Positions 6,488-64,000 of a stretch of DNA of 64,000 bases are shown here, piece after piece. Every line of letters starts with the position of its first letter. The stretch's first letter is position 1. Source of the DNA: Eukaryota sp. TZLM1-RC (taxonomy: Eukaryota; Protista; Metamonada: BaSk clade); assembly GCA_040285825.1 (NCBI GenBank), contig JAUPSS010000002.1:2108001-2172000 (forward strand), in the 5' to 3' direction. Below the pieces are notes generated by a model. That model saw nothing but the letters and a program-made list of their open reading frames with translations, had not been told where the DNA came from and did no database searches. The translations under genes were made by a program, and so were the position numbers.

Positions 6488-6566
6488 AAACGAACACGGG
6501 CAAGAGATGGAGGTGAATGAAAAATAAATTGTAGTTTGTTTCTATTTGAATCTGCAGACACCTCAA

Positions 6567-9500
6567 ATGCACAGTGGGTCTCACTTTAGGGATCCTCTCC
6601 AGGTTCTTCCGACCTCTGTCACTTTTTCCATATTCAACAAATCTGAAGTAGAGAACTTGTCCGTCTGCAAGGTTTCTAATCCAATCCTTTTCGATTCTCT
6701 CAGTAATCCGTGTCAAAATGGTCTGTATGACCCTCGTATGGGTCCATTAAACCCGTTTGAAAACTGTGCCACTTGCAAACTCAATCATCAATCTTGCCCT
6801 GGACACATGGGCCATATCGAGCTCCCATTCCCTGTTTTCAACCCACTAGTGTTCCCTACTCTTTATTCTCTCATGCGAGCAAAGTGTTTCAACTGCCACA
6901 AGCTCCGAATCTCCCGCACCAAAGCTGATCCTATCATCACCACCATCAAATCCATGGCCCAGGGACCCATACAAAGAGCCGCAATTAAGACTTTCATCTC
7001 CAAAATGCCCCCCAAATGTGACAATTGTGGCGCTGTTACTCCTAAGCTCCGCAAGGAAGGTGTTGTAAAGATCTTTATTCTACCACTTTCCCAAAGAGGA
7101 AGGAGGGTCAATGCTGGTATTGGTGTCGATATGAAGTTGCCTCCGTTCTTGACCCCCAAGGATGTCTATGAGCATTTAAAACAAACTTTTGGCTTGGAGT
7201 ATGATTTACTCCACGTGTTGTGCCCAGGAACTACAGTATTTGGTACGGAGGGTCATGATTTTTTCTTTATCCAATCACTACCAGTTCCGCCTTCAAGATT
7301 TAGACCTCCTTCTAAAATGGGTGACCAGACATATGAACATCCGAGCAATGGTCTTTTAGGGAAGATTCTTTCCACTAGAAGAGACTTGCTAAGGTCAGCC
7401 AAGCCTGTTTCAAACAAGGACAATGATAATAAAGGAGACGAAGGGGAAAACTTGGAGGGAGAAGTAGATGAAACTAGAGGCGAAGGGGAAACTCAAATAG
7501 ATTATCATAATAGGATTCAGAGAACTTTAAGCTGCTATTTCCAATTACAACATGATGTCAATACTTATTTGGATGCAACCAAGAACCCCAACCCTCCCTA
7601 TGGAGGAAAGATTATCCCTGGTGTACGTCAATTATTAGAAAAGAAAGAGGGTCTTTTTAGACAAAATATGATGGGAAAGAGAGTTAACTATGCTGCTCGA
7701 AGTGTAATCTCCACTGATCCTTATATTGCCACGACTGAAGTAGGAGTTCCGCAGGTGTTTGCAATGAAACTTACTTTTCCTGAACCTGTAACTCCTTATA
7801 ACAGTGAGATACTTCGAAATGCTGTACAAAATGGTCCTAATGTCTATCCAGGTGCTAACTTTGTGGAGGATCAAAAAGGAAATCTTATTGATCTTGCTCA
7901 CTTATCAAAAGACAGAAGGGAAGGTATTGCGAAACTGCTGCAAACTCCATCAGGCCATCCAAGTAATTTACCAAAGAGGGTGTATCGTCACTTAACTAAT
8001 GGTGATGTTCTATTGGTAAACCGACAGCCTACTCTTCACAAGGCCTCTATTATGGCACACAAAGCGAAGGTTTTGCCCAATCAGCGGACCATTAGACTTC
8101 ACTATGCTAATTGTAACTCATACAATGCAGATTTTGATGGTGATGAGATGAATCTCCATTTCCCCCAGTCGTTTGAGGCCAGATCTGAAGCTTATAACCT
8201 TGCACTTGCAGATAAAATGTATACGACCCCCACTGCTGGAAACCCTATTAGGGGTTTAATTCAGGATCACGTCATGGGAGGGTTCTTTTTGACCTTGAAG
8301 AATACTTTTCTGTCAAGACCTATTTACACTCAGTTGGTTTACTCTGCTCTTTCCACAGATTCTAGTTTATTTAGTCAAAAGTTGGTCACGATTCCTCCTG
8401 CTGTATTGAAACCTAAACCTCTATGGACAGGAAAGCAAGTTATTTCAACTGTTATCAGGTTGATTGTTGGAGAGGGCGTTCCTTTGCCTAATATTACCGC
8501 GAAGGGTAAGGTTTCTGCTAAAATCTGGACTCCCTTACATGAGGAAGAAGCTTCTTTTTTGATGAGAGGTGGCGATCTCCTTACCGGTGTCATAGATAAG
8601 AACCAGATTGGACCTTCAAAGTTTGGTTTAGTCCACTCTGTTTGTGAGTTATATGGACACACGGCTGCTGGAAGATTGTTGTCATCTTTGGGTCGTCTCT
8701 TTACCACTACTGTTCAATACTTTGGTTGTTCTATTGGTGTAGCTGATATGATTTTAACCGAGGAAGCTGATGACAGTCGTAATCAAATCCTCTCAGTTGC
8801 CAATCAAAAAGGCCAGGAAGTTGCCGCCAAGTTTGCCGCCCAAGAACTTACAGGAGACTATGAAAATGATGGTTCTGATTTGACCACTGATCAAGTAAAG
8901 GCATCGCTTGGTAGAATTCTGCATGATGAAGAGCTTGCCCCTAGATTGGATGGTTCTTATGCTGGTGCTTTGGCCCAACTTGCTGGTGATGTTATCGATG
9001 CTACTGTGCCAAAAGGTCAGATGGTTTCATTTCCTTATAACAATCTAATGACAATGGCAACAATAGGTGCTAAGGGCTCCAATGTCAATGTCTCTCAAAT
9101 CAGTTGCCTTTTAGGCCAACAAGCTCTTGAAGGTCGCCGTGTCCCAGTCATGCCCTCAGGTAGAACTTTACCTTCATTTTCCCCCTACGACCTCTCCCCA
9201 AGAGCTGGAGGGTTTGTTCAGCAACGTTTCCTTACTGGAATTAAGCCTCAGGAATACTACTTTCATTGTATGGCTGGGAGGGAAGGTCTTATTGATACCG
9301 CCGTTAAAACGGCCAATAGTGGATACTTACAACGATGCGTAATTAAAGCTTTGGAATCCCTTACCCTTGCTTATGATGGTACTGTTAGAGAGTCTGATGG
9401 GTCTGTTATTCAATTCCTCTACGGTGAAGACGGTTTGTCTACCCAGGATACCAAGTTTTTAACCGAATTTAAGTTTATGGCAAGTAATTTCAAGCCATTA

Positions 9501-11225
9501 ATTCACTCGGCTCAATTAGCTTGTATTTTGCCAAAGTTAGATTTGAATGCAGCCAGAACTGCAAAATTTGATGTAGAAACTGGCGGTGATCCTGTCTTGT
9601 CTCGATTGAGCCCTTTTAACTGTCTGGGAGCCGTTTCTGAATATTTTTCTGATGCCCTTGAAGAGTACATTTCTTCAAACCCTGATGGCTTGGTTTCTCT
9701 CAACTCTGATTTAAGTCCTGATAAGTTTAGAACGTTAATGCACTACCGATACCAACAATCTCTAGCTCATCCAGGGGATTCTGTAGGTGCTGTTTGCGGT
9801 CAATCTATTGGAGAACCATCTACTCAAATGACCCTCAACACTTTCCATTTGGCTGGACATGGTGCCGCCAATGTCACTCTTGGTATTCCTAGGCTTCGAG
9901 AAATCATTATGACTGCTGCGAAAGTCCCCAAGACTCCAACAATGACATTACCTTTGGTTGTGGGCTCTACAAAGAAGGAAGCGTACAAACTAGCCAAGAA
10001 CCTCTCTAGAATAGGAGTTTCTGATGTTTGGGGTGGTCTGACTGTTACCAGTAGTCTAGAATTGAAGAAAGGGTCACAAGGAGCTCGAGTTTATAAGTTG
10101 GAAATTGACATTAACAATGAGGAAGTAATGAAAAGAAATAATGTAACTAGCACTCAATTATCAAATACTTTAGAAAATAAGTTTTTACCAAAGTTAATTG
10201 TTGCCATTACCCGAGATTTAAAGAAAAGTGGCGATCAATCTACTGTTGTAAGTCAAACCACTTTTGAGAGAGAACGAAAGTATCTTTATCGGTTGGAAAA
10301 GGCTGCTATTGAGGGAAAAGAAGATGATAATGAACAAGATATCGGCAAGACTATGGATGATGATTCTGATAGTGATCATGATTCTGACGTTGAGGTTCTT
10401 GAAGATTCAGATAAAAAGACCAGAGTTAAAGAATATGACGACGACGATGATGAAGTTGAAGCGGAAGGTTCAGACATGGAGGAAGAGGTCGAAGGTGAAG
10501 ATTTGGACGTGAAAGGTGAAGAAGAAATGGGACAAGAGGATGAACTTAATGCCAAAGTCAAGAAAAATGATGGAGCTAAAGGTTCGTTTAGTCATCCTTT
10601 TATTAGAGGATATTCCGTCAATAATGATTCATTTTCTTTAACTTTACAAATTCCTGCCAGATTGAGGAAGATTTTAATGCTTACTGTGGCTGAAAAAGTT
10701 GCAAAAACTGTTTATGTTCGCGAAATTAAGGGTATTACTAAGGGTCATGTAAACCAATCAAATACTCAATCGACACCAGTAATCACGACAGATGGGGTTA
10801 ATTTCGAAGCTGCCTGGTCTCTAAGAAGTCGGATTGATATCAACAAAATGGCCACTAATGATATTTATCAAACTTTATTAAATTATGGTGTGGAGGCTTG
10901 CAGGACTTCAATTATCCGCGAAATTAACAATGTGTTTTCTTCATATGGAATCGATGTAGATCTTCGTCATTTAGCCTTACTTTCAGACTTTATGACATTT
11001 GAAGGTCAATATAGAGCTTTAAACAGAATTGGAATGGATAATTCAAATAGTCCTTTCCTGAAAATGTCATTTGAAACTACTGCCTCTTTCTTGACAAAGG
11101 CTGTTTTGTTTAAGGAAAACGAAGATTTAACTACACCTTCAGCTAGAATCATTGTTGGGCAACCTATGAAGTCAGGAACCGGCTTGTGTGAATTGAGATA
11201 TCCAATGGAGATTTCTTCGAATTAG
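6567..11225 (+). CDS. RPA1: DNA-directed RNA polymerase I largest subunit
   Basis: GLYDPRMGP, CPGHMGHIEL, KKEGLFRQNMMGKRVNYAARSVI, catalytic YNADFDGDEMN, TLNTFHLAGHGAANVTLGIPRLREI and a Pol I-type acidic insertion. Intronless; first ATG at 6567. Confidence 0.97.
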   Translation: MHSGSHFRDPLQVLPTSVTFSIFNKSEVENLSVCKVSNPILFDSLSNPCQNGLYDPRMGPLNPFENCATCKLNHQSCPGHMGHIELPFPVFNPLVFPTLYSLMRAKCFNCHKLRISRTKADPIITTIKSMAQGPIQRAAIKTFISKMPPKCDNCGAVTPKLRKEGVVKIFILPLSQRGRRVNAGIGVDMKLPPFLTPKDVYEHLKQTFGLEYDLLHVLCPGTTVFGTEGHDFFFIQSLPVPPSRFRPPSKMGDQTYEHPSNGLLGKILSTRRDLLRSAKPVSNKDNDNKGDEGENLEGEVDETRGEGETQIDYHNRIQRTLSCYFQLQHDVNTYLDATKNPNPPYGGKIIPGVRQLLEKKEGLFRQNMMGKRVNYAARSVISTDPYIATTEVGVPQVFAMKLTFPEPVTPYNSEILRNAVQNGPNVYPGANFVEDQKGNLIDLAHLSKDRREGIAKLLQTPSGHPSNLPKRVYRHLTNGDVLLVNRQPTLHKASIMAHKAKVLPNQRTIRLHYANCNSYNADFDGDEMNLHFPQSFEARSEAYNLALADKMYTTPTAGNPIRGLIQDHVMGGFFLTLKNTFLSRPIYTQLVYSALSTDSSLFSQKLVTIPPAVLKPKPLWTGKQVISTVIRLIVGEGVPLPNITAKGKVSAKIWTPLHEEEASFLMRGGDLLTGVIDKNQIGPSKFGLVHSVCELYGHTAAGRLLSSLGRLFTTTVQYFGCSIGVADMILTEEADDSRNQILSVANQKGQEVAAKFAAQELTGDYENDGSDLTTDQVKASLGRILHDEELAPRLDGSYAGALAQLAGDVIDATVPKGQMVSFPYNNLMTMATIGAKGSNVNVSQISCLLGQQALEGRRVPVMPSGRTLPSFSPYDLSPRAGGFVQQRFLTGIKPQEYYFHCMAGREGLIDTAVKTANSGYLQRCVIKALESLTLAYDGTVRESDGSVIQFLYGEDGLSTQDTKFLTEFKFMASNFKPLIHSAQLACILPKLDLNAARTAKFDVETGGDPVLSRLSPFNCLGAVSEYFSDALEEYISSNPDGLVSLNSDLSPDKFRTLMHYRYQQSLAHPGDSVGAVCGQSIGEPSTQMTLNTFHLAGHGAANVTLGIPRLREIIMTAAKVPKTPTMTLPLVVGSTKKEAYKLAKNLSRIGVSDVWGGLTVTSSLELKKGSQGARVYKLEIDINNEEVMKRNNVTSTQLSNTLENKFLPKLIVAITRDLKKSGDQSTVVSQTTFERERKYLYRLEKAAIEGKEDDNEQDIGKTMDDDSDSDHDSDVEVLEDSDKKTRVKEYDDDDDEVEAEGSDMEEEVEGEDLDVKGEEEMGQEDELNAKVKKNDGAKGSFSHPFIRGYSVNNDSFSLTLQIPARLRKILMLTVAEKVAKTVYVREIKGITKGHVNQSNTQSTPVITTDGVNFEAAWSLRSRIDINKMATNDIYQTLLNYGVEACRTSIIREINNVFSSYGIDVDLRHLALLSDFMTFEGQYRALNRIGMDNSNSPFLKMSFETTASFLTKAVLFKENEDLTTPSARIIVGQPMKSGTGLCELRYPMEISSN

Positions 11226-11284: not shown

Positions 11285-11761
11285 TTATTTTCTTATTTTA
11301 ACCCTGGCCTTATACATTTGTTTTTTCTTTTGAAATAAGGGGTGCTTTTTCTGTACACCGCCACTCACAATTTTCGAAGCAATTGCTGATGGAGGTCGTT
11401 TATCTAAAACAGCGATTGTTTTCTTTTCTTTAGCTTTACCTGCCTTTTCCATTGCTATTTTTTTGAGTTGTTGTTTTTCGCAGAGAAGATTGGAATAGAA
11501 TTTGGCCCAACTTGAAGGAGGTCCTCTTCTGGTGACTAAAGCTCTGGTCCTTTCAGGAAACTCTTCATAGCAAATATTTCGCCATATATGATCAAAGTGC
11601 GCTCCAAGTGCAGGATTGAGTTCATAAATTCTCTTGAAGTTGTGATGTTCCATTTTAGGTAGAACATTGTCTAATATTGAAGGAGGGATGTTGCCCAGGA
11701 AAGCTATATCGTCCTGGAGTGACAAACAAACATCTTCAGCTAGTTGCTTTAGAGAAATCAT
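11285..11761 (-). CDS. Elongin A-like protein (BC-box)
   Basis: N-terminal SLKQLA...LGNIPPSILDNVL...IYELNPAL...DHIWRNIC...SWAKFY fits the Elongin A/Ela1 pattern. Confidence 0.75.
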   Translation of the reverse strand: MISLKQLAEDVCLSLQDDIAFLGNIPPSILDNVLPKMEHHNFKRIYELNPALGAHFDHIWRNICYEEFPERTRALVTRRGPPSSWAKFYSNLLCEKQQLKKIAMEKAGKAKEKKTIAVLDKRPPSAIASKIVSGGVQKKHPLFQKKKQMYKARVKIRK

Positions 11762-11802
11762 TGAAACAGATATTGTCTATAACAATGAAATAAGTGTCCT
11801 GT

Positions 11803-13611
11803 TTACACTGATGTAGAGGGTACCTTTTTCTTTGAACCTTTGTCAACCTTGGCTCTCTGTAGGTATCCTGGTCTATCTCCACCATTTACATGTGCTTCCA
11901 TCACTGGCAACATATTCAGCGAAGCATTTCGATCTCTATTGCACAAACTTTTGCATGATTTACACATGGTAAGCCTGTGACGAATAGACATCTCATGCCT
12001 CTTCCATGGCCTAGGATTTCTGCGTATCGGAACGTTTCAACTTTTTCTGAGCTTTCTTACAGTTGAAACAACAGCAACTGGTTCGAAACTCATCAATCAA
12101 AAAGACCTTATAACCAGCCTTTTTAAATAGAAATCTCAAACCTTTTCCTTTGGTAGGTTCTTTGAATTTCATGTGTTTTCGTTGTTCCAGTCTCCGATTC
12201 CGATAACTACTTGGCCTGGATCACCAATTACTGATTTGAATCTCTGGATCATCTTCGCCTCAGATCTTGTGCGATTAATCTCAGCCCACCATCTTAGTTT
12301 CCTAAATATTTTTTGATGATAGACTTCATTCAACAATACTATTCACATAATTCTTTTGTTTAATATACTCCATAAATCTATCAAACCTGCAGCTTTTGGA
12401 ATTGAATTGGGATAATGTTGCTTCCCGTTCTGCTCCAGATTTAGTCGTGTGATCATTATTTCTCAAATTTAATGAGTAATCAATTTCGTGGGGAATATTG
12501 ATTTCTTGAGGTACTTTTCCTCTTAATAAACTAATTGTTCTTTCAGTCATTTGATTAATTATACTGCTGCTTAAATCCATTCTTTGTTGTTGCTCTTCAG
12601 ATGGTTTATAATTGGATAGATCAATCACTCTACCAGTAGAGTTACTTATTGTGATAAGAGTGTCATTCCGTATGCTGTCTCTTATTCTTTTGAATTTGGA
12701 ACTTTTCGAATCAAATCTTCGTTGATTTTGAGTGTACCTGAAGTGAACATATTTATCTCTCTCAGGCTTTTTTGAATGAGTCATTTCAGTAGCTAAATTG
12801 GCAGAAAAATAGAGTAGATCAGATTTCCCTGGATCAGCAGCAGCAAGGGTCATATCTTGAAATTCAGAAGGATTGATGCTGGGGTCATCAATATATTTTT
12901 CTTTATCTTTTAAGTCTTTTGCAGTTACTTTGTATTTTTTCAAGTCAATTCTAGATTGAATGAAACTTACTGCTATTTCATCAGTCTCGATACTAGACAT
13001 AATGCACTTGGAACTTTCTGAATAAAGTTCAGTGGTTTTAATCTCGTACATTTTTAAAATGGTGTCCCACATAACCAAATCAGCAGCTTGATTATTGCAT
13101 TAGTAAGACGACCTTGGACCAAGAATGTCCTTGAATTGGACAAAGAACTAGTCCAATAAACTTGTCTTGTCAATTCTGATATACGAGGGAATACAAGAAT
13201 TCTTCAAAGGCAGAGCATGAAAGAGTTTGCTCTCCTCATCTTCTAAATAATTATTAATATAAAACATTGCCCTCAAATAGTAATTTGATTTTGACGAAAA
13301 ATCAAATTTTGAATACTTTTCCCTTTTAGAATTACTGGGAAGTAAAAGAGGGATCTGGTCATTAATGAAAAGCGAAGTAATTGATGAGACTTTGTTTCTC
13401 ATTGCAGAAGTTTCGCCATCAATATCTTTACATCCTTCTAGAAGGAGAGATTTAACTTTGCTGATGAATAATGAGAAGTTTTTCCTATCTTGCTTTTTCA
13501 GGACATTGTTGTTTCTCTTAACATCATAAAAACATCGACAAACCGATCCAAGTAATCAAAGTAATGTTCCTGGATGTTATTTTTGAAATTCACAATCAGT
13601 TTGTCAATTGT
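11803..13611 (-). pseudogene. Fanzor1 (family A), C-terminal part: REC/WED, RuvC and zinc finger; frameshifted
   Basis: NNIQEHYFDYLDRFVD, LFHALPLKNSCIPSYIRID, IETDEIAVSF, RuvC-I AAADPGKSDLL, FRYTQNQRR, FRKLRWW...SEAKMIQRF, IGIGDW, KEPTKGKGLR, RuvC-II LIDEFRTSCCCFNC, CKSCKSLCNRDRNASLNM (RuvC-III), RPGYL. Confidence 0.92.
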
Positions 13612-16600
13612 AGAATGTATTTATTGAATTTGCACACTTAATTAAATTAAATCATAACTAATGGGACGACTATCATTGAACCAAGATTTCCTCTACAAAA
13701 TCTTGATCTGCTTGCTGTCTAGCTAAAGCTGCTCTAATTCGATTGAAAAACTTTTTTTTAATAGGATAAATTTATTTTCAACGCTAACAAAACATTAAAC
13801 AAAAAACTAGAACTCAATATCCTCAATACACGCATCAACATCATCAAATCTTTTAAGCGCGCGATTTTCATACTCTATTCCTAATTGTAACAGTGCTTTG
13901 GTCAACATTTCTGGAATTGCTTTAAGAATACTGAAAACAATTCTATTGTGCCAGAAATTGAAGTTCAATTCTTTTCCTGCTCTTTCTTTTATTAAACTTC
14001 TGAAACCTTCAAGAAATTTAATGCCAGATATTCCAATGTTACCAAAAAGAGAAACAGCAAATGGAACCAACTGATACTTAACATGCTCAACACGTCCTAG
14101 CTGAGATAAGGGTTCATTGTACTTTTTGATTTTGCTCTTTTCAGCAAAGCAAAGTGGAGTTTCATCTCTTTTAGCAAAGTCAATTGCTGAGTCTTTACAA
14201 ACATCAACAGTGACAACATCAACAACTTTAATAACACCATCAGACGCAGGAGTAATTAAATCAGCACGGCGTTTCCCAAAAGTATTTTCATTTTCATTTT
14301 CAGATGACAACCTTCGCACAAGTGGTTCAACAAAAGCTTCAATGTGATGGCTTTTGCATATAGCGTATAGTTGGTCTCTAACAGCATCGTGAACAACTGA
14401 GCGATATGTAATATTAAATTTGCAATTAAATAAATGATTCAGATTAATGAGCTGACCACAACGACAAATCAAATCATTTGGCACACTACATGGCCACAGG
14501 AAACACCTCATCCTGAAGGCAGTTGTCCATTGATGATCATTTAATAATAGACCATATACATTTGGAATCTGGGAAATAAGACAACTTGAGCTACTATCCT
14601 TGAGGTCAATTAAGAAGTTTGCAAAAACGGGATTCTTTTCTTTAGCCAAGCTAAGACGAACAGTGAAATCCAAGTTTTCAAAAACTTTTAATATCTTTTT
14701 CTGCAATTTAGCATATGCAAATTTCAAGGAAATCAAACTCCTGGGTGGAATTTCTTGAATATCAGCAGGAAAGCATTTGGACCATATGTGAGGAGAGATG
14801 CATTCAATTTCACTCTGCAAGGACACTAAATAGTCACTAACACAACATTCTATCAAATGCTGGTTTTCAGGAAAACGTTTCAAAAATTCAAAAACGAAAT
14901 TTTTTCCTCCACCGATGAATGCGGCTTTACACAAATATTTTGATTTGTGAAAATCCAGGCCTCCCAATTCTGTGCTACAAAAAATATGACTACGTAAAAA
15001 AGAAGAATCAATATCGAGCAAATTAGCCAAAAATTTTGTTCTTAATTCATTAAAAATTCTGCAAAATTCGAGAGAAATAGATGGTGATGTTGATCGTAAA
15101 ATATGAGTAAATTTCCCTGAATAACAAATTCTGAGGAAGAAAAATTTAAGATGTTTTTCAATATTTAAATCTGAAAGAACCATCAATTCTTCTTCAAAAT
15201 TATCCAAAAGAGAGGAAAGCTGATTTCGAATTTCATCAAAGTTGCCTAAATAACAACCTAAAAAACGAAATCCTGATTCAAAATAATTGATGAAAGGAAC
15301 ACTTTGATCATCAATAATGAGATCAGCAGGCTCTCTACCAATCAATAAACATTTGGAAATATTTAGAGAAAGACCAATTTGATAATAGCGCTGTTGAACA
15401 ATTTCAGCAATTGTTCTCAATGAATCAATTGGACCAATTAAAAATTGAAAAACCGAAGTAATTTATTAATAATGGCAAATTGAATCCGTGAACGCCATAA
15501 AAAAATATCAAATCTTTTCATTGTTTTTTCTTGCACCATTTTTTGGAAGTCATCCAAAAAAGTTTCTTCTTCAACTGATAATCTTCCATTTATCGAAAAT
15601 GGGAAAGCAATAAAAACCAGCTGTGTATTTCTATCGACATTAGCCTCTTCAATATCTTTATCATATTTTCTATGTTTCTGTTTTGCTTTAAAATCCAGAG
15701 CAGCCACAGGATTAAGTTTTCTTCTGTGAACCAAAGTATCATTAGCAACATTACATGAGACAAAGTCAACAATAGCTTCAAAATTATCAATCCAATCACA
15801 GTATAGATCACCTCTATCATCAGAACCAAAATTATTCAGAGAAAGTGTTTCCTTCAGCAGAGGCTCTTTGATACAAGATATTCTTGTAGTTTGTGTCATA
15901 TGGAAAACAGTGTCTCTAACAACATCATGTAATGAAGAACGATAAGTTATCAATTTAGAACAATTCAGAGCATGGCGCAAAGTGAACTGAGGTGAATTCG
16001 AACAAATACATTTTTCTTTTGATAATAATTGATTAATGGGTATATTCAAATACAATCTCATTTTTGTTACAAATGCTTCATTAGCAGCACACAGCCCAAA
16101 TCTTCGTGGTACAATGGTTACAAACAGTGAAGAATCTGATGACTGGTTTTCACAAACACCCTTTTCCAATAACAATGAGTGAAAAACTTGATTTAAAACA
16201 GCCGAGCTGCATATATTATTATTATTATGATCTTTTTCATACATTCCAGTCAATCGTTTCTGTAATGTTCGAAGAGTGTACTTCAAATTTAAACATTTTT
16301 TTCTGGAATATTGCCATTTAATGATTGGGGAAAACATCGACCCCATTTTTCTACATCAATTTTTGGAATTTCTTCATTTAATGCAAAAACAGTGGAACTT
16401 TGCGTTGCCATCAATAAATCTTCCCAATCAGCAAATCTTTCGGAAAACTCAAAGATTGCATTTCTGCATCCACCAACAAAAGCACACGAGGTAAGAATAG
16501 AAGCCTTCGTCCACCCTAAACCACCATAATGGGGACTAAGGTAAGCATGATCTGGAATTTGAAACATTTTACATCCCAGTAATTGAGACAGAACTTTTGC

Positions 16601-16964
16601 ACGTAACTCATTAAACTTCTGAGCCAAAGGTCTAGTGACGAGAGGATTTGTAGATCGAAATATATGATTAAAATTGGAACTAAAACACAGTCTTATAATG
16701 GTAAATTTGATGTGTTTTTTTATATCTAAATTCATCATTCGGTCAATTTTCTCAGAAATTGAGTTCAACTTTTCAAACAAGTTTTTGGTAATTTCATCAT
16801 TATTTCCAAAAAACGAACCCAAATGACGAATAGCATCAATTGAATATAATTTGGCTTGAATTTCAATACCACCAACTATTGTGGAAACTGGAGAATTCGA
16901 TAACAAAACACATTTAAGTAAATTAAGTCGGAGACCAATTTTGGTAAATAATTCTTTAAAACAA
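13612..16964 (-). mobile_element. 5'-truncated RT-RLE non-LTR retrotransposon (family 2, CRE-like) inserted in Fanzor A, itself split by family 1
   Basis: 12-bp TSD TTTGTCAATTGT at 13600-13611 and 16965-16976. RT C-terminus (RHLGSF, YGGLGW), C-x-C...H-xxx-C zinc motif and RGDL...VDFVS..K-xx-KY RLE. Near-identical to 47400-49040. Confidence 0.9.
13752..15443 (-). mobile_element. 5'-truncated RT-RLE non-LTR retrotransposon (family 1, CRE-like); ORF 13807-15420
   Basis: FRFLGCYLG, LGGLDF, CRCG...HLFNC, RRADL...VDVVTVD...EKSKIKKY. A8 tail (13752-13759) and 10-bp TSD ATTGAAAAAC (13742-13751, 15444-15453). Confidence 0.92.
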
Positions 16965-17340
16965 TTTGTCAATTGTGTAATACAAAATATTACTTATTCC
17001 TTTTTTTGAGAATACTTTTGGAACAAGTTTTTCTTTAAAGTGTTGGTGAATTTTAACCCGAGAATTTTGCAATGCTGTTTTTGTCTTTGCGTTAAGGGAA
17101 CTTTCCTCATCGCTTTGGGACGTGACCACAAGAAAAGCATCACGAAATAATTGGGTTTCAATTTTTGGTAAAATAGCATTTGGGTTTAAGTCAAAAAAAT
17201 GCAAATAATAACCACAAATGAATTATAAACCAACAATAGAAATTTCCTGACACCTAATTACTGCCTCATCGATCACTTCAATCATTTTCGGATCTCTGAT
17301 GACATTTTTTAGACTGTCCTTATAACCATCATAAGGTTTA
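16965..17340 (-). pseudogene. Fanzor1 (family A) N-terminal part
   Basis: KDSLKNVI...IDEAVIRCQEISIVGL*FICGYYL...LPKIETQLF...ISNILYYTIDKL. Continues in frame across the TSD into IVNFKNNIQEHY at 13599. Confidence 0.8.
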
Positions 17341-18120
17341 TGTTTAACAGTTTCCATGAATTGGTCATTGTTAAAGAAATTAAATAATTTCATGGTTAAA
17401 TCTGCATCCCTTAAACAATAAACTGCAACTGCAGTACTTCTTTGGTATAAGGAATAATCTGAGAAGGGACTATCTCCATGAACCTTCCAATACTTTGCAA
17501 TATATTGAGGATCAAGGTCAATTTTACTTTCCCCTAATAAAATCTTAGAAATTGTGTTTAGTTTGCGTGGTTGATAATAATTTCTGTAAATACTACAAGT
17601 ATCAACAACAAATCGACCAGCAATTAAGAAGTTCAAGTGGTTGTGATTCAATTCTATTAAATTTGAGTTATAGTATTGAACCCATTCAGTAGCACCGATT
17701 TCACCCTTAAAAAAGTCCTCATTTTCAGAACGTTTCATAATATGTGGAACGTCCAATTTGAGAATATTAAAACCACATATTATATGAGGATTATAAGTTT
17801 CTAATAATTTTTTAAATGAACTGAGCAATTCTTTTTCAAAAGAATGATGATATAAAGTGATATTTTTATCATCAACTTTGCAATAATGTTCATTTTTGCT
17901 TGTTGATTTTTCTACAAGATCACAAAAACAAAGATTTAATTCAATCTGTTCTCGAGTAAAAATGTGAGAAACAGAATTTGGAACAATGTTTTTTGTAGAT
18001 TTACAGTAAGAGATGAAATGTTCTCTTGCAGCAATGACAATTATTTCATCCTCATCACTGAGCTTTTTACCCTACACCAAAATTTCAATATCAAAATGTA
18101 AAATTCTGAGAGTAAATTGT
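17341..18120 (-). pseudogene. PolB-type DEDDy 3'-5' exonuclease domain, in frame with Fanzor A
   Basis: ExoI ILHFDIEI, SFEKELL...F, ExoII IICGFNILKLDVPHI, GRFVVDT, KLNTISKILLGESKIDL, ExoIII YCLRDADL. One TAG at 18072-18074, same frame on both sides. Confidence 0.85.
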
Positions 18121-18299
18121 GTTTTGACATTTGATGGTGTCACTAAAGGGTATCTATATCGAATCATCGGATTCTCATTGAAAAGTGTTTTTACACGTTT
18201 CAAAGGTCTGCTCAATACATCGGCTCGTCTTTTTCTGATGGTTTTATGTACAGAGGAGCACTTCTTTGTCTCAAATAATTTTCGTTCATTGTCAACACA

Positions 18300-18895
18300 G
18301 CTATAAAAACATCTTTTGTCTTGGTTGACAAAATGTTTAATATGAGCTGAATCAATTGAATTGAGCTGATTTGACAAAAATAAATTGATCATTCTTTTTG
18401 CAAACAATATGGTGAATATTCCACAATCATACAAATTAGATTGAAAAAATTCAGATATATTCTGACTGATATTGATTCCAAGTTTTTCAAAAATTATTGA
18501 ATTAATTTTTTGATGTTGTTCTTCATTATGACGAAGACTATCAAAAAGAAAAGCTTTTACTGTTGTGGATTTGATCCAGAATGTAACAAGTACCCAATGT
18601 TGCCCAATGGTAAATTGTTCGTCAACAGATGGAATCAAATTTGATTGATGAAATGCATCATTATAGGGTAGATGAATCAATGAATATTCTTCGTCGCCAG
18701 AATTGATCAATTGTGAGCAAAAATCCTCTTGAACAAATCCCCTAAAAAACAATAGGGGTGATGCGATGGGACAAACAAGTATTTGCTGATGTGACAGTGG
18801 AGTTGATGTCTGATTGATAAAGTTGTTGATTGAATCAGTGATTTGTTCATCATCCAACCACCTGTCCTTAACATCATCACTTTGTTGCCCTTCAC
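18300..18895 (-). pseudogene. Ulp1/SENP-like (C48) cysteine protease domain, same ORF as the exonuclease ExoI motif
   Basis: WLDDEQI, LIHLPYN, QHWVLV (His), FLFDSL (Asp), FQSNLYDCGIF (Gln/Cys). Confidence 0.88.
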
Positions 18896-18960
18896 CTGAT
18901 AAATTAATTTTTTTAAAATATATATTGTTATTATAAAAAGGAATTAAATTTATATAATTT

Positions 18961-19500
18961 TTAATGAAAAAAATTAAAAAAAATTTCATCAGATGGGCCA
19001 TCAATCTTTCCAAAATAAACACAAAATGAATTGCTCCCTTCTATAAAGAGGCTGTGGGTGGAAACACTGATGTGTGAAACACATACAGCTTCCAGGTTCG
19101 TGCCCCAGACACGACCTGCAAATTCACATATATTGTTTTTTCTTGAAGTTTTTGACAAATGTTTATTAATCAAAAATGTTGAATAATTAATTAAAAAACA
19201 ATTTTTAAAAACTTCATGATGGACTACTTGGACACATTGACCCTTCTCAACCAAAAAAGAGGAAGAGTCAATCTGACCAAGTAGTCTATTTTCAACCAAA
19301 TAGTAAGGAGAGTCTTCATGAGAAAAAGTTCCCTTGTTACATTTGGTTAAACAATAACTCACCTGTGAAGGTGGAATCTCAGGAGGGTTGGAAATGAGCT
19401 CCCAGTAGGGCTCAATGCAAGCTTGCTCCTGGATGGTTTCACTCAGCAGCGAATCCATATAATTCTGAATCCTCTTTGGACCAGGGGGTGCGTCTGACAT
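18961..19500 (-). CDS. Unknown ORF, possibly the first exon of the Ulp1-exonuclease-Fanzor gene
   Basis: ATG-initiated 179-aa ORF, co-oriented, separated from the Ulp1 domain by a ~94-nt extremely AT-rich stretch ending in ATCAG. Confidence 0.45.
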   Translation of the reverse strand: MSDAPPGPKRIQNYMDSLLSETIQEQACIEPYWELISNPPEIPPSQVSYCLTKCNKGTFSHEDSPYYLVENRLLGQIDSSSFLVEKGQCVQVVHHEVFKNCFLINYSTFLINKHLSKTSRKNNICEFAGRVWGTNLEAVCVSHISVSTHSLFIEGSNSFCVYFGKIDGPSDEIFFNFFH

Positions 19501-19675
19501 GTAGTGAAAATAATGAGCTTATTTATCAAATTTTGCACTTGTCACCCCATTCTCGACTTCTGGTTGCCTATTCTGACTGGTGTTTAACCCTCAACTGAGG
19601 ATTTCACTTTTCCATTCATTTCACCAACATTCACCAGCAATCTCAAAGTCTCATTGCAATTCCAATCCAATTCTC

Positions 19676-19768
19676 ATGACCACAAACTTCGTCATTGCAG
19701 TGGTGGGCTTTGACATAAAAACCGGTGCTACTGTTGAAGCTTCGTTCCCTCAACCTTACGTTTCATAA
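19676..19768 (+). pseudogene. Possible uDENN/longin-like gene fragment
   Basis: FVIAVVGFDIKTGATVEASFP resembles the uDENN N-terminal strand motif; the frame does not continue cleanly. Confidence 0.3.
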
Positions 19769-20718
19769 CGACTGGCTAATCTGCTCTTCAGTACAATGTA
19801 TAAGAAACCCCTCTGTTGAACGGGGAGGCAGAATCACTGCGATTGCTATCCTTTCATCATCCCACCCTTTCATTATGAGAAATCATTGAGAAGATGATTG
19901 TAATCCACAAATCATGATAACAATGAACCACCTAAGCACAAGTCTGCAGATGAGAACATCTCTACATATTCTTCCTCCAATAGTCCTGTTGCTTTACATG
20001 GACCTCCTGTGACTCGCCGAAATGAACTTCCATTCTTCTTCTATGTACTACAGTATCTGTTCTGGTATGTTGGCTTGGGGTAAAACAACTGGGTTTCCAA
20101 GTTGATTAATCCTTTACAATAACATCTTGTGCACTATTAATAAAGTTATTTTAGACCTTGTCTATCAGCATTGCTTCAGCATGATGATCACGATATATGT
20201 CTACATTCATAGCGTTTTGGCACAGATTCAGTCAAAACAACAATTGTCTTGCTTTTGCCAAAGTCATTTTGGTTGAAATAAATTTGCAGTTCCAAAAAAA
20301 GTTCATCAAATTATTTAGCTTATCTCTTACATCATTTGTAAATGATCAACGTCTGGAGAGATCTTTGATATTGTGGCAGCTTTTGTTTGATGCCTTGATA
20401 ACATTTGTTTATGTATTAATTGAAACCTAGAAACCAAAAGATTGATTCAAACCTTCAACATTTTATTTGGCTTTGGAGTAAAGTCTACTTTTTTGTTGGT
20501 TTCAGATTTTGGTGATGAATGTTTCGGCGATTGTGTGGAAATTCTATCATAATATAATATATAATACATAATATAATATGAAAGTCTATGCTATCATCTG
20601 CTTATTCCACATTTCATTTTTTTTGTGTCAATTAGTACAACAACGATCGACTGACAAACACAAAATTGTCTAAAAAATGAAATTACTATTATTACTTATT
20701 ACTTAATGAACTTATCTG

Positions 20719-20809: not shown

Positions 20810-21097
20810 AATTGAATAAATTTACCACTCATTTTGTAGTGGAAAACAAGGTCACAAACCTAATCTTGATAAACAAGACAATTATGTAATACTATAAAAG
20901 TCGACAAGCAGTTTCATGGGGTTTGAGGCAGTGTAATCAATGCAAAACGTTCTGGAATCGAGATACAAGTTCTGCTCTAGATATTCTGATGTTGGCTGAA
21001 CACATTCTGGATGGAAGAGGGAGATCAGAGGTGTTTAAGAAACAACAGTCTCAAACCAAAGTTATGAACCCACTGATGACAGTCTAAAGGCTGCTGG
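20810..21097 (+). pseudogene. Fanzor C-terminal remnant (family C)
   Basis: WGLRQCNQCKTFWNRDTSSALDILMLAEHILDGRGRSEVFKK..., stop at 21085-21087. Confidence 0.85.
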
Positions 21098-21742: not shown

Positions 21743-23656
21743 ATGGCAAATCCAGAGTTGCCACGTCGATGGCGTGTACTCCCCTGGGAGGTTAACCGTC
21801 GTGAGCAACCAATAAACGACAGCAAGACGACAGTTCCAGCAAGTGCTGCTCGTTTCTTCTCTACTACAGCTCCTGTTTCAATGGAAAGACAGTTTCGCTA
21901 TATTCGAACTGTCACTGTGCTTACTGCCCGGGTAGCACAGCTGTTTGTCCTGCAATATCCGGAAATGGCTTTCTGGTTATATCAACAACAGTTTTGGTAT
22001 CAATGTCAAGACTTTGTAATGGTACCTCATCCGACTGTGAGACGCCCATTGGAGAATCATATGGAAGTGTACTGCGCAATCTATGATGTCTCTTTCCGAC
22101 CTGGCTGGCCGTTTCCTCCTATTGTCTTTCAGAAGGAACCCGACAACTGGTGCCACTCTGACATTAGAAGCTTTCGCGCACTGCAAATGGCGAACAGCTT
22201 TTGTCAAATACTTACTGATGGCCCTGTCTCCTGGAAGCTGAACTTCTTCCGGACAATGGCTACCTTCTTTGAGTGCCCTTGCCCAAAGAAATATGCTTCA
22301 TTAGTGGTGAACACGACTGCAGCCACTATTCCTGGCTCTTTGCGCGCATGGTTTGATGAAAGTCACCATGAGTACATAATGGACCTTTTTATTCAGCAGG
22401 TTGCCGACCCTCATCGTTTTGACGCTATGTTGATGCTGGACAATGTTGATCTCAAACCAGACAACATCACCTTCTTATTCACTGCTGGGCTAAATATTTC
22501 ATCCTTTCTGGAAAATATTGCATCTGACACCATGCGAAGAAATGCCGTGTCCCCATCCCCCAGTTATTCTCCTAGCTTTATCTTTTTAGTCAAAAACTGG
22601 AAAAGCATTTTCTCTCTTTTAATGCCAACCACTGTCTGCTGAAAGATCCGTTTGCCTTTTTCAGAAAAAAGTAGTATCTGACTTACATAATCAGTTCAGA
22701 TGCCGTTTCAATCCGCTTCACTTTTTCCTTTGCCCCGAAAAAAAAATAAAAATCGCCGGACAGCCACAGAATTGGCAACCACCATAGCCAGTGGGGAACT
22801 CGAAATACCTGCAAAGAGTCGGAAGCGAAACTCTAGACTTCAACAACAGGTCCGTCCAAGGCAACGTCGAAGAACAGACGACGCCTATGAGCCTCCGCCA
22901 GTTGATCCAATTGAATATTCATTTTGTGCAATTGATCCTAATCACAAAAATTTGTGTGGTTATTCAATTGGATCAAGAGTTGATAATAACAAAGTTGATC
23001 ATCAACTTTCGGACCTTGTTCTGAATTCAAAGGCAAGGAAGATCATTCACCCACCGGTCCTGACCCATGCATCATCAAATTGCTATTTTGCTAAGAATTT
23101 ACACAAATATCTTAATGAAATAGCAATGCCTTTGATGTGGGTACCGACACAGGAAGAAATCAACAATCCCGACTTCCGTCCGAGAACTATACTAGACCAA
23201 CTGCTGATAAATGGAGATCGCCGAGCCCTGCGCCGCAACAAGTTTGATTTCTTTATAAGAAGGCAAAAAAGAATAATGGGATTTATTGAAAAAATAAAAC
23301 TAATGGCTAATGAAAGAGAAACCATAATTTGGTTTGGTAGTGGAGGTGATGGGCCATCAAGACAATCTGTGAAAACCTCAAGGAAGCGCTTTTTGAAGGA
23401 GATTCAGAAACATTTTACACATGTGAAGCCTAATGGAGATGAATTCTACACATCTGCCAAAACGAATTGCTGCAAGGTATTCAATCAAAAGTTGTATCAC
23501 GATGATGGGAGGGTGAACAATGATAAGTTTGTATGCCCTCAATGTCAGACACTCTGGTCGAGGGACATCTCAGCTTCCAGAAACCAACTGGAGATTGCCA
23601 TAAGTGAGCACTACTACAATGAAAGACCTGAGGCGTTTCGGAGACCCCATAGATAA
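21743..23656 (+). pseudogene. Divergent Fanzor (family B), near full length, broken around 22580-22750
   Basis: RuvC-I FCAIDPNHKNL, IIWFGSGGDG, RuvC-II GDEFYTSAKTNCC, CPQCQTLWSRDISASRNQL (zinc finger and RuvC-III), RPEAFRR. ORF1 end (NISSFLE...AVSP..SYSPSFIF) and an alternate-frame IISSDAVSIRF parallel motifs in Fanzor A. Confidence 0.85.
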
Positions 23657-32803: not shown

Positions 32804-34769
32804 CAGGGGTCTGAATAATTGAATTGGCAATTAATTGCTAGAGCCAAATTGGAGCCAATCAATTATTGCAATTAGTGCAATTAATTGCTAATTAATTGCA
32901 ATTATGTATGTAACACAGTAAAACTCATTTTTATAATAAAATACATAAACAAAACTATAAAAAGAATGATGAACTGAACACAGATCACTTTAGTTTTCTA
33001 ATCAAACAATTCATCTTCTTCATTCCATTGACTTGAACATACAGTACGAAATACTGTCATATCCCATAACACTTTGATACATTTTAGAAATAACGAAATA
33101 TTTAGGTGCTCATCAGATAATCGATGTCTGTGAAGTCCATACTGAGATTTTACTTCGGAAAATAGTCTTTCAACTCTAACACTGGTGCAAGGAATAAAGC
33201 TCAAATCAATGTAGGCAGTTTGTCCTTCAGATTTCCCTTCTTTTAGTAACAACCTTCTTTCTGTATAACTACGCCGTTTTGTTCCCACATTCTCTTCAGA
33301 CACTATAATATCATCCTGGTGTAGTTGTTGAAACTTCGTTAACGAATTATGCTCGTCAATACTTAAATACTGTTCCTCTTTGTCCAGAACCTTCAATACA
33401 GCAGACTCAAAAATTCCGAACTCTTCAGTAATGGGTGCTCCTACTGAAGTATATGTGGTCATATCAGGGAAGTCTTGATGGAGTAATTGAAAGATGTCTC
33501 GGCTATCGGATATAGACAATCTATCTTCTTGGAGAGCAACATTGGTTTCAGTCAAATTAGCTACGGTTTGCTGAAAAGCCCTGAGTCGATTTTCCTCAGC
33601 GGGAGTCAGCATCTTTTCAACAATGCAATCATCCATTCTGGTCACCATATCCTGTAAGTCAAAATAGGAATTTGCTTAATCGAAATGAGAAGTCTATCTT
33701 GTAGTGTTAGCCCGTTTAGGCAAATCTTTATTACAAAAAGATAGAATCAACGCGGCTTTACTAATTCGAAGACTCACGAACAAATGGTCAATTTTTTTGA
33801 AAATATCGGTAAGATTTTGGCAGCTCTTTTGTAACTCCAATTGAAAACGATGAGCAGCACATCCAATGAATTGCACATTCAGTATTCTTGCCAAGCGCTT
33901 ATTTGTGGGACAGTTGTCTCCAGTTACAAATAAAATATTGTGGAATGATTTTGCAAATCTGTTTAAAACAATTTCGATCAATTCGTATATTTGTTGGGCA
34001 CCAAAGTAAGTATGAGTCACTGATAAATCTTCAATGGTTTTGTTCTTATCAATTTCAAACGGGACAATGGCTAGTAAGAAGGAGGATGAACAATTTGGTA
34101 TAGCTGCAAACATTCCAAGGTAATGCATATGGGAATGGGGATTGTACCAGGTGTCGAGCACTAGTCCAAATTTATCACCCAACTTCTTTTTTAAGGTAGA
34201 AGCTACTTGATCTGATAGCAATCTAGCATATTTAAGAAGAGTGGTGGAGCAAATAGGTTTAAGTTTAGTGTTGTCACGAACATGTGGTTTGTCAACAAAG
34301 TTGTAAGGAAGGGAGTCTTCGATCACCCACTCTAACCACTTGAAAACGTTACTGAACTTGTCTTCAACAATGAACTTTGTCATAGAGAGTTGAGCATTAC
34401 TTCGAAGTTGACTATACTCTTCATGTAATTTGGGGTGCTTACCAACAAGATGGTTATATAGATTTGTCCAACCGGCTCCCTTTTGTTGATGAACAATCAT
34501 GTTGCATCTACACTTATAAGCAGTGCCTTTACGAGAAGGAGTAGATTCTAGTTGTTCGTCAAAGAAAGATAAGCAAAGCTCTTTCCGATCTCTGGGTAGA
34601 ACCATATGGAAATGAATGAGGTAAAGACTTTTGAATAGTGTTTTATTCACAATAAACCAATTGGAACTAATTGGCAATTAATTGTCAATTGTCTCAACCA
34701 CTCCAATCAATTATTGCAATTAATTGATTGCCAATAATTGAGTTGCCAATTCAATTATTCAGACCCCTG
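32804..34769 (-). mobile_element. Full-length hAT DNA transposon (1966 bp); transposase inactivated by two in-frame stops
   Basis: 27-bp TIR CAGGGGTCTGAATAATTGAATTGGCAA; 8-bp TSD GATAAAAG (32796-32803, 34770-34777). BED finger (CRC...NLYNHLVGKH), LVLDTW, VTGDNC, CAAHRFQL, TR*TS, TSVRVERLFS. Confidence 0.96.
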
Positions 34770-35058: not shown

Positions 35059-35418
35059 GAATTGCTGTAAGGTATTCAACCAAAAGTTGTATCACGATGA
35101 TGGGAGGGTGAACAATGATAAGCTTGTATGCCCTCAATGTCAGACACTCTGGTCGAGGGACATCTCAGCTTCTAGAAACCAACTGGAGATTGCCATAAGT
35201 GAGCACTACTACAATGAAAGACCTGAGGCGTTCCGGAGACCCCATAGATAAGTGTTTTTCCATGTAATGCGTACCTGTACGCGTATTGTGATGTTGCTGC
35301 TTTAACTATCATTTGATCGTGATATCATATAGTGATAGAACTAAAGTAAGTTTAACGTCTATCAAGATTGCATGAATTGGTCAAAAGCCAGAAGTGCGTT
35401 TTGATAGAAATTCACAGT
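35059..35418 (+). mobile_element. 360-bp 3'-terminal copy of Fanzor family B (zinc finger/RuvC-III coding end plus candidate omegaRNA)
   Basis: Matches 23464-23823 with about 7 substitutions by eye. Confidence 0.92.
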
Positions 35419-38694: not shown

Positions 38695-39740
38695 ACTGTG
38701 ATCTATCACTACCATTGTCGTGGGCTTCGAGTACTACCAACATTCAAAGCAATATTTCGATCTCATTTTACAAACTTTTACTCAATTTACATATGGTAAA
38801 AGCATATGAGCGCACATCTATTGTGTTGGTAATAGTAATATTTTCTTGCACTCTATCAATATTTGAACTTTTTTCTGCTTCCATACAATTGAAACAACAA
38901 CCGATAAAAAATTCATTAATTAAAAAGGTCTTATAATCAGAAGTTTAAGATAAAATTCTTTAACCTTTTCCTCTTGAAGATGTTTCATATTAACATGTTT
39001 ACGTTACCAGTCTCCAATTCCAATTACACTTAGATGGCGTAACTGATTACCATTTTCAAGCACTGAATTGATTTCATTCCACCATTACAATGTCCAACAA
39101 CCCTTACAGTGTTATTCACAAATTCAGTTCACTTAATAGATTCCAACAATGTTGCAAAGTTACTGCTTCAAGAGTTGATTTGTGATATAAAATGGTTTGT
39201 CATTCTTCAATAGATATTGTCTGATCATTATTAATCATGTTTTTAATTCATTTGCTGTGACAATTTCAAGTTTTGAGATACTTCACCTCCAAAATAATTG
39301 AGAATTAATAGTTAATACTTCAATCAATTTTACTGATAACCACATCCACGCATTGTTGTTAAGCCCCAGTTAATTTAAAGTTATGTGGACCAATTTTTCC
39401 TTTGTGTATTATTTTTCAATGTAATCAGCGTATCTTCACTATTATCTCACTGGTTGGCCAAATGTAACATCTATTGCATCAAAACTCTATGGAACTTGAG
39501 TGTACACAACAGTTTCTAGTTTTTAGATGAATAACTCATTACGAACCGACATCATGTAACAAGTAATGTGTGTATTTTTGCACATAAATGAAATAAGTCT
39601 GTTTTACATGTATCAGCAGCAGCAAGAGTGACTCCATGACGTTATGAGAAATCTCTGACAAGGTCATCAATATATTATTCCTGTCTATCAAATGTTTTGA
39701 ATGAAGTGACGTTCATTATTTCAAGTTCATTTTGGATTGA
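38695..39740 (-). pseudogene. Heavily decayed Fanzor family A relative
   Basis: Nucleotide similarity to 11870-12210 and 12830-12900; VIGIGDW, RGKG, FLINEF..CCFNC and TLAAAD remnants. Confidence 0.75.
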
Positions 39741-39789
39741 AAAATGTACTGCTTCTACCACTTTTACAGAACCTTCAAAGAGGAGTCTC

Positions 39790-41449: not shown

Positions 41450-41807
41450 CTTTAAAAACTTGAAACATCAGAGACCTACTCCAGGTATTGGATGGATTCA
41501 ATTTTTGAAAAGAAATGGATTTGAAGTACTGATGATTAATGAAGCTTTCACTTCAGCAAAATGACCTGTTTGTTTTGAGAAGGTTACTACGTTTTTGAGA
41601 TTAACAAATCCCAGATTCTATAGAAGGAAAAAGACTCCAGTTACTACATGTCATGGTTTATTAGCTTGTAATATTGAGAGTTGCAAACTCAGTAACAAAG
41701 GCTCACCAAAGCTTTTCAATAGAAATAAGCTGGCTTGTCTGAATATGTTTGCAATGGCTGAAGCCATAATGAGAGGTAATGAAAGGCCTCAGTATCTGTG
41801 TAGTTGA
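41450..41807 (+). pseudogene. Fanzor1 C-terminal remnant (family D)
   Basis: KHQRPTPGIGWIQFLKRNGFEVLMINEAFTSAK*PVC...NPRFYR...CHGLLAC...SC...FNRNKLACLNM...RPQYLCS; RuvC-III Asp replaced by Asn. Confidence 0.88.
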
Positions 41808-62700: not shown

Positions 62701-64000
62701 ACAAAGATAGAATTATCATCATTAGTAGATACTTTAGCATTTGAATCAACATCAATACTGAATACACCATTTGAATTAACTTCCAAACGAGCATTATTTA
62801 AAAGGTTCAAATCATTAGTTAACCAATCAACACCACCAGATATTATAAGGAGATGGTTGTCAATTTCCCGAGATTTAGTGTTGAAAGATGAATTATCATC
62901 AAAAATACCAGAATTAGTGACAAAAGTAGTGGAAACTTGAGAATCTGAAGAGAGCAAACCACTAGTCCAATGATAGTTTTCAGCTTGAATATCGGTATTT
63001 CCTGTTCTGGTTCCATCATAATGATTGAAAGTGGTGATCTGAACTGTATTTGGACAGCTGACATTAAATACAGAATCTTGAGTTAAATCAAGCACTAATA
63101 ACTCAAGATTACAATTATCATTGGTTAATTCAAATAGAGCAGAATCTTCAAGTAAAATTTCAGTGATTGAAGTATTAATAGAGGCAAAATCTTCCAAAAC
63201 AAAACTAGAATCATCACTTAAAACTAATTTACTACTGGACAAGGTGATAGAAGAACTTTCATTTAAGTGAATAAAACCATTATTTGTAACAATTAAATCA
63301 TTAATTTGATGAATAACCGATGAACCTCTACCATTAACCAAACCTCCGTCAATTTCAAAGATGGAGATAACATCAACACTGGCGGTTTCATCAAAAACAA
63401 GCAAACCATCGGTAATTTTGATAAAAAGTGACTTGGTATCAGAATTATCAGTAAATTCAACACTTCCATCAATTAGTTTTAGATTAGCATTTTCAATGAT
63501 GGAATCATCATGAAACTTTGCAAAACTGTTTGAATCTACAACTAAATCACCATCTAAATCAAAGGTTCCAGCCACTTTCAATTGGGAATTAGGAGTTTTC
63601 ATTAAAATATCTGAATTTCCATTAATTAAACCATCAGCTTCCAGAATAAATTCATCATTAATATTTAGAATAGAATTAACAGTAAGGAAGCCATTGAAAA
63701 TTCTTGATGTGTGTTGAAGATAAAGAGAACCAGAACTCACAACAAACTCACCAGAATTATCAAATAAACAGTTGATTGTTAAATCAAAACCACAATTCTT
63801 GGAAACTTGGCCATTATTGACAAAGATAGAATTATCATCATTAGTAGATACTTTAGCATTTGAATCAACATCAATACTGAATACACCATTTGAAATGACT
63901 TCCAAACGAGCATTATTTAAAAGGTTCAAATCATTAGTTAACCAATCAACACCACCAGATATTACAAGGAGATGGTTGTCAATTTCCCGAGATTTAGTGT
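50754..64000 (-). CDS. Giant single-pass surface protein: 373-aa tandem beta-rich repeats, PSI-like Cys domain, TM helix, Ser/Pro/Lys-rich tail; 5' end lies outside the window
   Basis: Open for 2797 aa, and the repeats continue to the window edge with frameshifts at lengthened homopolymers. CAEITSCERCVSHSNCGW; LYLGLFFAILLLSSLGVFWYRKR. Confidence 0.85.
54945..64000 (-). repeat. Coding tandem array, 1119-bp unit, about 8 near-identical copies
   Basis: Equivalent positions at 55852, 56971 and 58090 give a period of 1119; the array continues to 64000. Confidence 0.97.

Follow-up and report, generated by a model that had tools for sequence, protein, structure and literature searches.

A dead copy of a multi-copy Fanzor1 element in Skoliomonas litria carries a protease and an exonuclease fused in frame to the nuclease and is inserted at a host start codon

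Organization of the locus

The stretch analyzed here, 64,000 nucleotides that we call the window, comes from the free-living metamonad Skoliomonas litria (assembly GCA_040285825.1, Eukaryota sp. TZLM1-RC; genus described in PMC11316075). Positions ~11765–19876 hold a Fanzor1 element on the minus strand, the strand of all window coordinates of the element below unless stated otherwise, which comes to 4.75 kb once long interspersed nuclear elements (LINEs) are subtracted. The copy is dead and belongs to an element that lacks a transposase and is present in S. litria in more than 20 copies; the open reading frame (ORF) of the family runs from a leader through an LxGG motif, an Ulp1-like protease and a PolB-type 3'–5' exonuclease to the RNA-guided nuclease Fanzor1. 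Other S. litria loci compared with the window are designated L001, L002, L003 and so on. The alignment comprised 11 family copies that, over the regions compared, are 90–95% identical to that of the window; the supporting copies all come from one long-read assembly, and errors of that assembly may account for some homopolymer frameshifts.

The window copy is decayed, as the original prediction had noted. It carries four premature stops and about six indels of 1 nt, has lost 15 and 36 nt in two in-frame deletions, and contains a 3.35-kb nested insertion of elements lacking long terminal repeats (non-LTR elements). The insertion (13612–16964) consists of a 5'-truncated non-LTR element (~15444–16964 plus a 3' tail at 13612–13751) enclosing a second one (~13780–15430), and it lies between the two copies of a 12-bp direct repeat, its target site duplication (TSD; 16965–16976 and 13600–13611). 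Both nested elements recur elsewhere in the window.

Independent copies read through as one open reading frame

The original prediction held that excising the nested insertion plus one TSD copy would join TIDKL to IVNFK in frame, and that upstream ORFs 18072–19022, 17223–17828 and 16956–17204 share one frame with only a single TAG and a single TAA between them. Both claims hold for the window sequence, and other copies bore them out. In P0003 (part of L002) a single ORF crosses the join from ExoII, and the same is true of L003:9407–11350, where 648 codons without a stop lead from the protease through ExoI–III into the N-terminal part of Fanzor and span both window stops and the insertion join. 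At the two stop positions the other copies have sense codons (5/5 and 7/7). Further upstream, L004:8222–9712 has no stop from the leader into ExoI, a span that takes in an AT-rich stretch and the protease; no intron separates its leader from its protease. An intron at 18896–18989 was considered for the window copy and rejected as needless, since L004 is open through that region and the window is one base off in a homopolymer run.

Across the 11 aligned copies, the family ORF is 1461 codons in one frame, and at no position do most copies carry a stop or a gap; one stop only is common to two copies. This exceeds the ~1200–1400 aa estimated earlier because the leader ORF (18961–19500) belongs to it. 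The order protease, exonuclease, Fanzor1 is repeated in unlinked loci on several contigs: every copy reaching that far (L001–L005, L009 and L010) carries the exonuclease upstream of Fanzor in the same order and frame, and L003, L004, L005 and L009 carry the protease likewise. In shorter copies the 5' truncation falls at scattered points within the ORF rather than at the Fanzor start. Of the two results that the original prediction had named as refuting it, copies that begin at Fanzor with no exonuclease before it and a failure of profile searches to assign 16965–17340 to Fanzor, neither was obtained. About 715 residues, holding two enzyme domains, stand N-terminal to Fanzor, and all of the ORF motifs were found (HW, FDS, Q...DCG, FDIE, GFN....D, YC..D, DPG, DEF.TS, the C4 zinc finger and NRD). 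We conclude that the ancestral element carried one 1461-codon ORF with all catalytic residues; the fusion is settled because independent copies in the same genome read through the junctions.

Substitutions shared among copies indicated purifying selection on the Fanzor part, with ratios of nonsynonymous to synonymous rates (dN/dS) of 0.31 and 0.19 (p ≤ 0.0014 versus private changes). Private changes were near neutral (0.6–1.0).

Domains of the fusion protein

The leader (codons 1–203; 18891–19500) has a 1-nt frameshift near 18966 in the window copy and is open and unspliced in L004; no convincing relative was found for it. It ends in a candidate self-cleavage site, LSGG (codons 200–203; 18891–18902), which is the sole [LMI]xGG of the whole ORF and lies 11 residues ahead of the conserved Trp of the protease; the post hoc expectation for such a motif is ~0.0025 per 30-residue window. 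CE-clan and papain-like ubiquitin-type proteases cleave after Gly-Gly, and for this reason removal of the leader by the adjacent protease would be the simplest reading of the site, which lends sequence support to the self-processing raised in the original prediction.

The protease (18347–18887) is C48-like, of the CE clan, an assignment that is solid at clan level. Its His (18599), Asp (18542) and Cys (18425) are kept in 5/5 copies, with the oxyanion Gln (18443) and the upstream Trp (18860) in CE-clan order. In the ESM Atlas, C48 was named in 28 of 30 feature matches (best score 0.95), with a template modeling score of 0.67 to an Ulp-family model; no Ulp1 domain homologs were retrieved by word-index search, PDB search or from viral contigs. 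A basic linker (18114–18346) follows, in which KTIRKRR is a possible nuclear localization signal.

The DEDDy exonuclease (17366–18113; premature TAG at 18072–18074) has ExoI (DxE, 18092/18086), ExoII (NxxxFD, 17768/17753) and ExoIII (YxxxD, near 17420–17408). It scored 36.8 and 57.3 bits with PF03104 (DNA_pol_B_exo1; gathering threshold 23), the window piece 17226–18071 giving E 3.6e-9, and its best PDB match was Pol delta (E 1.5e-7). The domains are ~30–39% identical to the nearest polymerases, yet every catalytic residue is retained.

The original prediction of a full Fanzor1 with the RuvC D-E-D triad and zinc finger also held: the window pieces tile positions 5–635 of a 655-position hidden Markov model (HMM) built from standalone Fanzor homologs of 633–728 aa. 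The N-terminal part (WED and the start of REC; 16977–17348) contains a premature TAA (17223–17225), and a profile search placed 16965–17340 in the Fanzor N-terminus. The remainder (11803–13611) comprises REC, RuvC-I (D 12835), RuvC-II (E 12091), the C4 zinc finger and RuvC-III (D 11934), with two stops and several 1-nt indels. The published Fanzor1 motif, D-X(125,275)-[TS]-[TS]-X-X-C4 zinc finger-X(5,50)-RD (PMC3627910), is present as D1106, T1357-S1358 (spacing 250), four Cys and R1406-D1407. The only PDB matches of the C-terminal Fanzor part were PpFz1 (E 7e-22) and SpuFz1 (E 4e-19), and the last window pieces matched the Pfam TnpB zinc-finger family. When the exonuclease–Fanzor junction of another copy was used as query, its first 160 residues matched polymerases and the remainder matched the extreme N-termini of 633–728 aa Fanzors. 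Judged by its sequence, the nuclease is a Fanzor1, nearer to Fanzor1 than to Fanzor2 or TnpB across its whole length. Compared with standalone Fanzor1 homologs, the family has ~70 additional residues after RuvC-I (window positions 12420–12690), which all of its copies keep.

Element ends and insertion sites

The right end of the window copy directly precedes the ATG of the host gene Elongin A (11285–11761, minus strand; PF06881, E 1.5e-10). A 13-bp TSD copy at 11752–11764 overlaps this start codon, and the candidate left copy (19877–19889), an exact 13-mer near the 5' homology limit, contains the Elongin A ATG; the null frequency of this 13-mer repeat was 0 in ~2000 random windows. All 16 distinct right ends observed share one conserved motif followed by an ATG within a few bases, and in 14/16 this ATG starts a co-oriented host gene, among them Elongin A, SERRATE, CHMP7, an HSP70-like gene, SGF29, a phosphatase and a deaminase. 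The motif was found at 0/27 control gene starts; a match to it in a metagenome was rejected as chance. Direct repeats were detected in four copies (13 bp in the window; 10 bp in L003, L007 and L012), one of them in a new locus after the prediction had been made. They open 2–3 nt before the ATG and recur just outside the 5' homology limit, with null frequencies below 1% each for the window, L003 and L007. Most copies have an intact 3' end and a truncated 5' end. We conclude that the element inserted at YYAATG so that its right end abuts a host start codon, and that insertion was often accompanied by 5' truncation and by target duplications of 10–13 bp.

A TSD can supply a truncated copy with a new start codon, as in L003:9232–9290, where the left duplication places its ATG in the reading frame of the truncated protease.

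The conserved right end (11765–11860, with a 36-nt deletion near 11820 in the window copy) is a candidate omegaRNA scaffold. By analogy with a system in which the TSD becomes part of the omegaRNA scaffold (PMC10711439), the guide would consist of the first host codons. None of the listed inverted repeats of at least 25 nt links the element ends, and the duplications do not follow the fixed-length pattern of transposons with terminal inverted repeats (TIRs). As the original prediction had noted, no transposase lies within the element bounds; RepHel is absent from the window ORFs and the gene lists of 13 loci, and the 3' hairpins are weak only.

At the other end, a 5' untranslated module (19501–19613) is common to L004, L009 and a different, standalone Fanzor in L010, with which the shared stretch is 19492–19613. 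The left part of the element also contains a captured host-like gene fragment (19676–19873, plus strand), and 19513–19806 is found in L004 as well; a DENN assignment of the fragment made by eye was not confirmed by Pfam. The standalone Fanzor, at L010:625–2580 on the minus strand, is an uninterrupted, divergent protein of 651 aa that belongs to a cluster of 82 S. litria proteins.

Related families and distribution

A second exonuclease–Fanzor family, at L003:6369–7943, has the same junction and no protease (21% identity over 374 aa). It sits behind a 2A-like peptide, GDVEANPGP (near 6124), directly upstream of a copy of the protease-bearing family, and each of the two families appears to have its own device for freeing the exonuclease–Fanzor from a leader. 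Trees with long branches did not decide whether the two share an origin. The RuvC-III of the second family (L003:6124–9133) reads NRN.

The window exonuclease piece matched itself and two further Eukaryota sp. TZLM1-RC proteins. Among the best 150 HMMER matches from a search of 1.84 billion representative sequences, both domains occurred together only in S. litria proteins; the other exonuclease matches were polymerases, and the Fanzor matches began at their own N-terminus. Metagenome and viral scans contained no exonuclease–Fanzor fusion outside Skoliomonas.

Comparison with known systems

The original prediction knew of no described Ulp1–exonuclease–Fanzor fusion, and our literature searches, with many subscription papers outside the searchable set, likewise turned up neither a natural fusion of Fanzor to an exonuclease or protease nor any targeting of start codons. 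The Fanzors in the papers searched have N-terminal, REC or RuvC extensions and no fused enzymes (PMC10432273, PMC10711439). The protease–exonuclease–Fanzor fusion is real, and it is new for Fanzor1.

With the Fanzor1 proteins SpuFz1 and PpFz1 (PMC3627910, PMC10432273), the S. litria element shares the full WED/REC/RuvC/zinc-finger chain, the D-E-D triad, a conserved right end after the stop codon, and, like Spu-1, multiple copies without a transposase of its own. It differs from them in the ~715 N-terminal residues with two enzyme domains, in the ~70 residues after RuvC-I, in having no TIRs that we could find, and in inserting at start codons. The closest published pattern is that of Chlamydomonas CRe-1/2/3 and Mucor MCi-2 (PMC3627910), a study that also described capture of Fanzor1 by many transposons. 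These elements likewise have intact 3' ends, frequent 5' truncation, no TIRs, variable TSDs (7–19 bp; 11–12 bp) and captured extra sequence beside the 5' TSD. However, their Fanzor1 is a plain one and their insertion sites lie after TTTT or at ATAATT, whereas the S. litria element inserts at YYAATG at host start codons, with no Helitron link seen.

Protease cargo is already known in transposons: C48/Ulp1 in the Mutator-like elements called Kaonashi (PMC4948706) and OTU/VTD deubiquitinases in Helitrons (PMC9741609) also place a protease for ubiquitin-like modifiers on a DNA transposon. There the protease has its own gene or forms part of RepHel; in S. litria it shares one frame with an RNA-guided nuclease and follows an LxGG site. 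A 3'–5' exonuclease tethered to an RNA-guided nuclease has been engineered in TREX2-SpCas9 (PMC13370227). The S. litria fusion, in contrast, is natural, PolB-derived and on a Fanzor, and its activity is predicted. It parallels the designs by which engineers obtain higher deletion rates, and it makes testable the fate of DNA ends after a TnpB or Fanzor cut in transposon retention. A second trait out of the ordinary is how strictly the right end is placed at host start codons; every guide would then be a host coding sequence, and the element end would replace the 5' region of the host gene.

Proposed mechanism and alternatives

The best overall explanation, to which we assign a probability of roughly 0.7, is a dead copy of a Fanzor1 element with one fused ORF, start-codon insertion, protease self-cleavage, and homing or retention by cutting and trimming. 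By cutting the polyprotein of which it is part after LSGG, the protease would release the leader, and a chain of ~1260 aa would remain; removal of SUMO, NEDD8 or ubiquitin may be a further role of the protease. An omegaRNA made from the right end and the first host codons would guide Fanzor to the empty allele, which would be cut ~16–21 nt into the guide match if Fanzor shares the geometry of SpuFz1 (PMC10432273). The tethered exonuclease could then trim non-homologous 3' tails at the break, allowing repair to copy the element in; incomplete trimming could, speculatively, leave the variable TSDs. Long-range mobility would need a helper in trans. We consider it unlikely that every part of the fullest form of this scheme holds, namely a self-maturing, cut-and-trim RNA-guided effector that takes its guides from the first host codons and has the element copied before start codons without a transposase, taking over the 5' region of the host gene. 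Activity of the family is something that we infer, because no transposase, intact copy, RNA data or relative outside Skoliomonas was found.

Several observations weigh against this explanation. None of the loci fetched holds an intact full-length copy of the fusion family; every copy observed is broken. None of the RNA sequencing runs contains the fusion stretch. The protease is weak in Pfam (PF02902, Peptidase_C48, on 18075–18896: E 0.0017, 18.7 bits versus a curated cut-off of 20.7; the L004 protease, at 14.2 bits, also falls below it), and its AlphaFold model from a three-sequence alignment was unusable (predicted local distance difference test score 35). The putative cleavage site reads LSGG in two copies only, L003 and L004, and LSGE in the window copy. 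For shared substitutions in the exonuclease and protease, dN/dS was 0.42 and 0.44, a trend similar to that in Fanzor and not significant. The right-end hairpins were no better than shuffles (z-scores −0.25 to −1.5), with no compensatory pairs or covariation. Finally, the right junction re-creates the target, which leaves the escape of the filled allele from cutting without explanation.

Three of the alternatives concern the fused ORF itself. That its pieces are unrelated, decayed and in frame by chance at the window locus is suggested by a region crowded with nested mobile elements, but this idea is refuted by L003 and L004 and retains next to no probability: the same order and open frame recur in unlinked loci on several contigs, and contigs from two other sequencing runs of one sample cover the leader, protease, exonuclease and Fanzor start with ~5–10% differences. 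The ORF could instead be real and its protease and exonuclease neutral cargo, caught in frame by a master copy in which Fanzor alone worked. Shared changes in these two domains do not fall significantly under the private rate, many 5'-truncated copies spread without them, and the element also caught a host-like fragment at its 5' end; yet all catalytic residues are kept despite the low identity to polymerases, the same junction persists in a family at 21% identity, and LxGG sits exactly at the protease N-terminus, and we regard this alternative as improbable. Slightly less so, though still a poor prospect, is that the polyprotein is split further, or that Fanzor is made from an internal start, with protease, exonuclease and nuclease acting apart. 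There is a Met three residues upstream of the Fanzor start, and related families have 2A peptides (as near 6124 in L003), but no 2A or Gly-Gly site separates protease, exonuclease and Fanzor, and ExoIII runs into the Fanzor N-terminus through a linker that is short and about equally long in the two families.

A further alternative touches mobility only: the element could have been copied as RNA by resident non-LTR retrotransposons, in the manner of short interspersed nuclear elements, with the start-codon pattern reflecting survival and not targeting. A fixed 3' end, variable 5' truncation and 10–13 bp TSDs do resemble the resident LINEs, which have 12-bp TSDs, and this account is a serious, if doubtful, contender. 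The element has no poly(A) tail, however, and the 17 LINE 3' ends that we examined have no fixed position before an ATG, so that the idea that LINE ends likewise abut start codons was not supported. The Chlamydomonas CRe-1/2/3 Fanzor1 elements, which bear the same signature, are moreover Helitron2-related (PMC3627910).

Other features of the window and compared loci

Besides Elongin A, the host gene RPA1 (6546–11225), named by eye, flanks the element. At least three other Fanzor families are represented in the same 64 kb by decayed or divergent pieces (38699–39753 and 35059–35358, on the minus and plus strands, respectively, and 41460–41800, 20923–21087 and 21743–23656, all on the plus strand). 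At L004:5683–8215, a LINE with a 12-bp TSD is inserted 12 nt upstream of the start codon of the fusion ORF there. Perfect terminal inverted repeats of 27 bp (32804–34769) flank window ORFs at 32998–34677 that look hAT-like by eye. A giant ORF on the minus strand (50754–64000) consists of 1119-bp (373-aa) tandem repeats that are ~98% identical, with a C-terminal transmembrane segment; the frameshifts in its repeats may be assembly errors.

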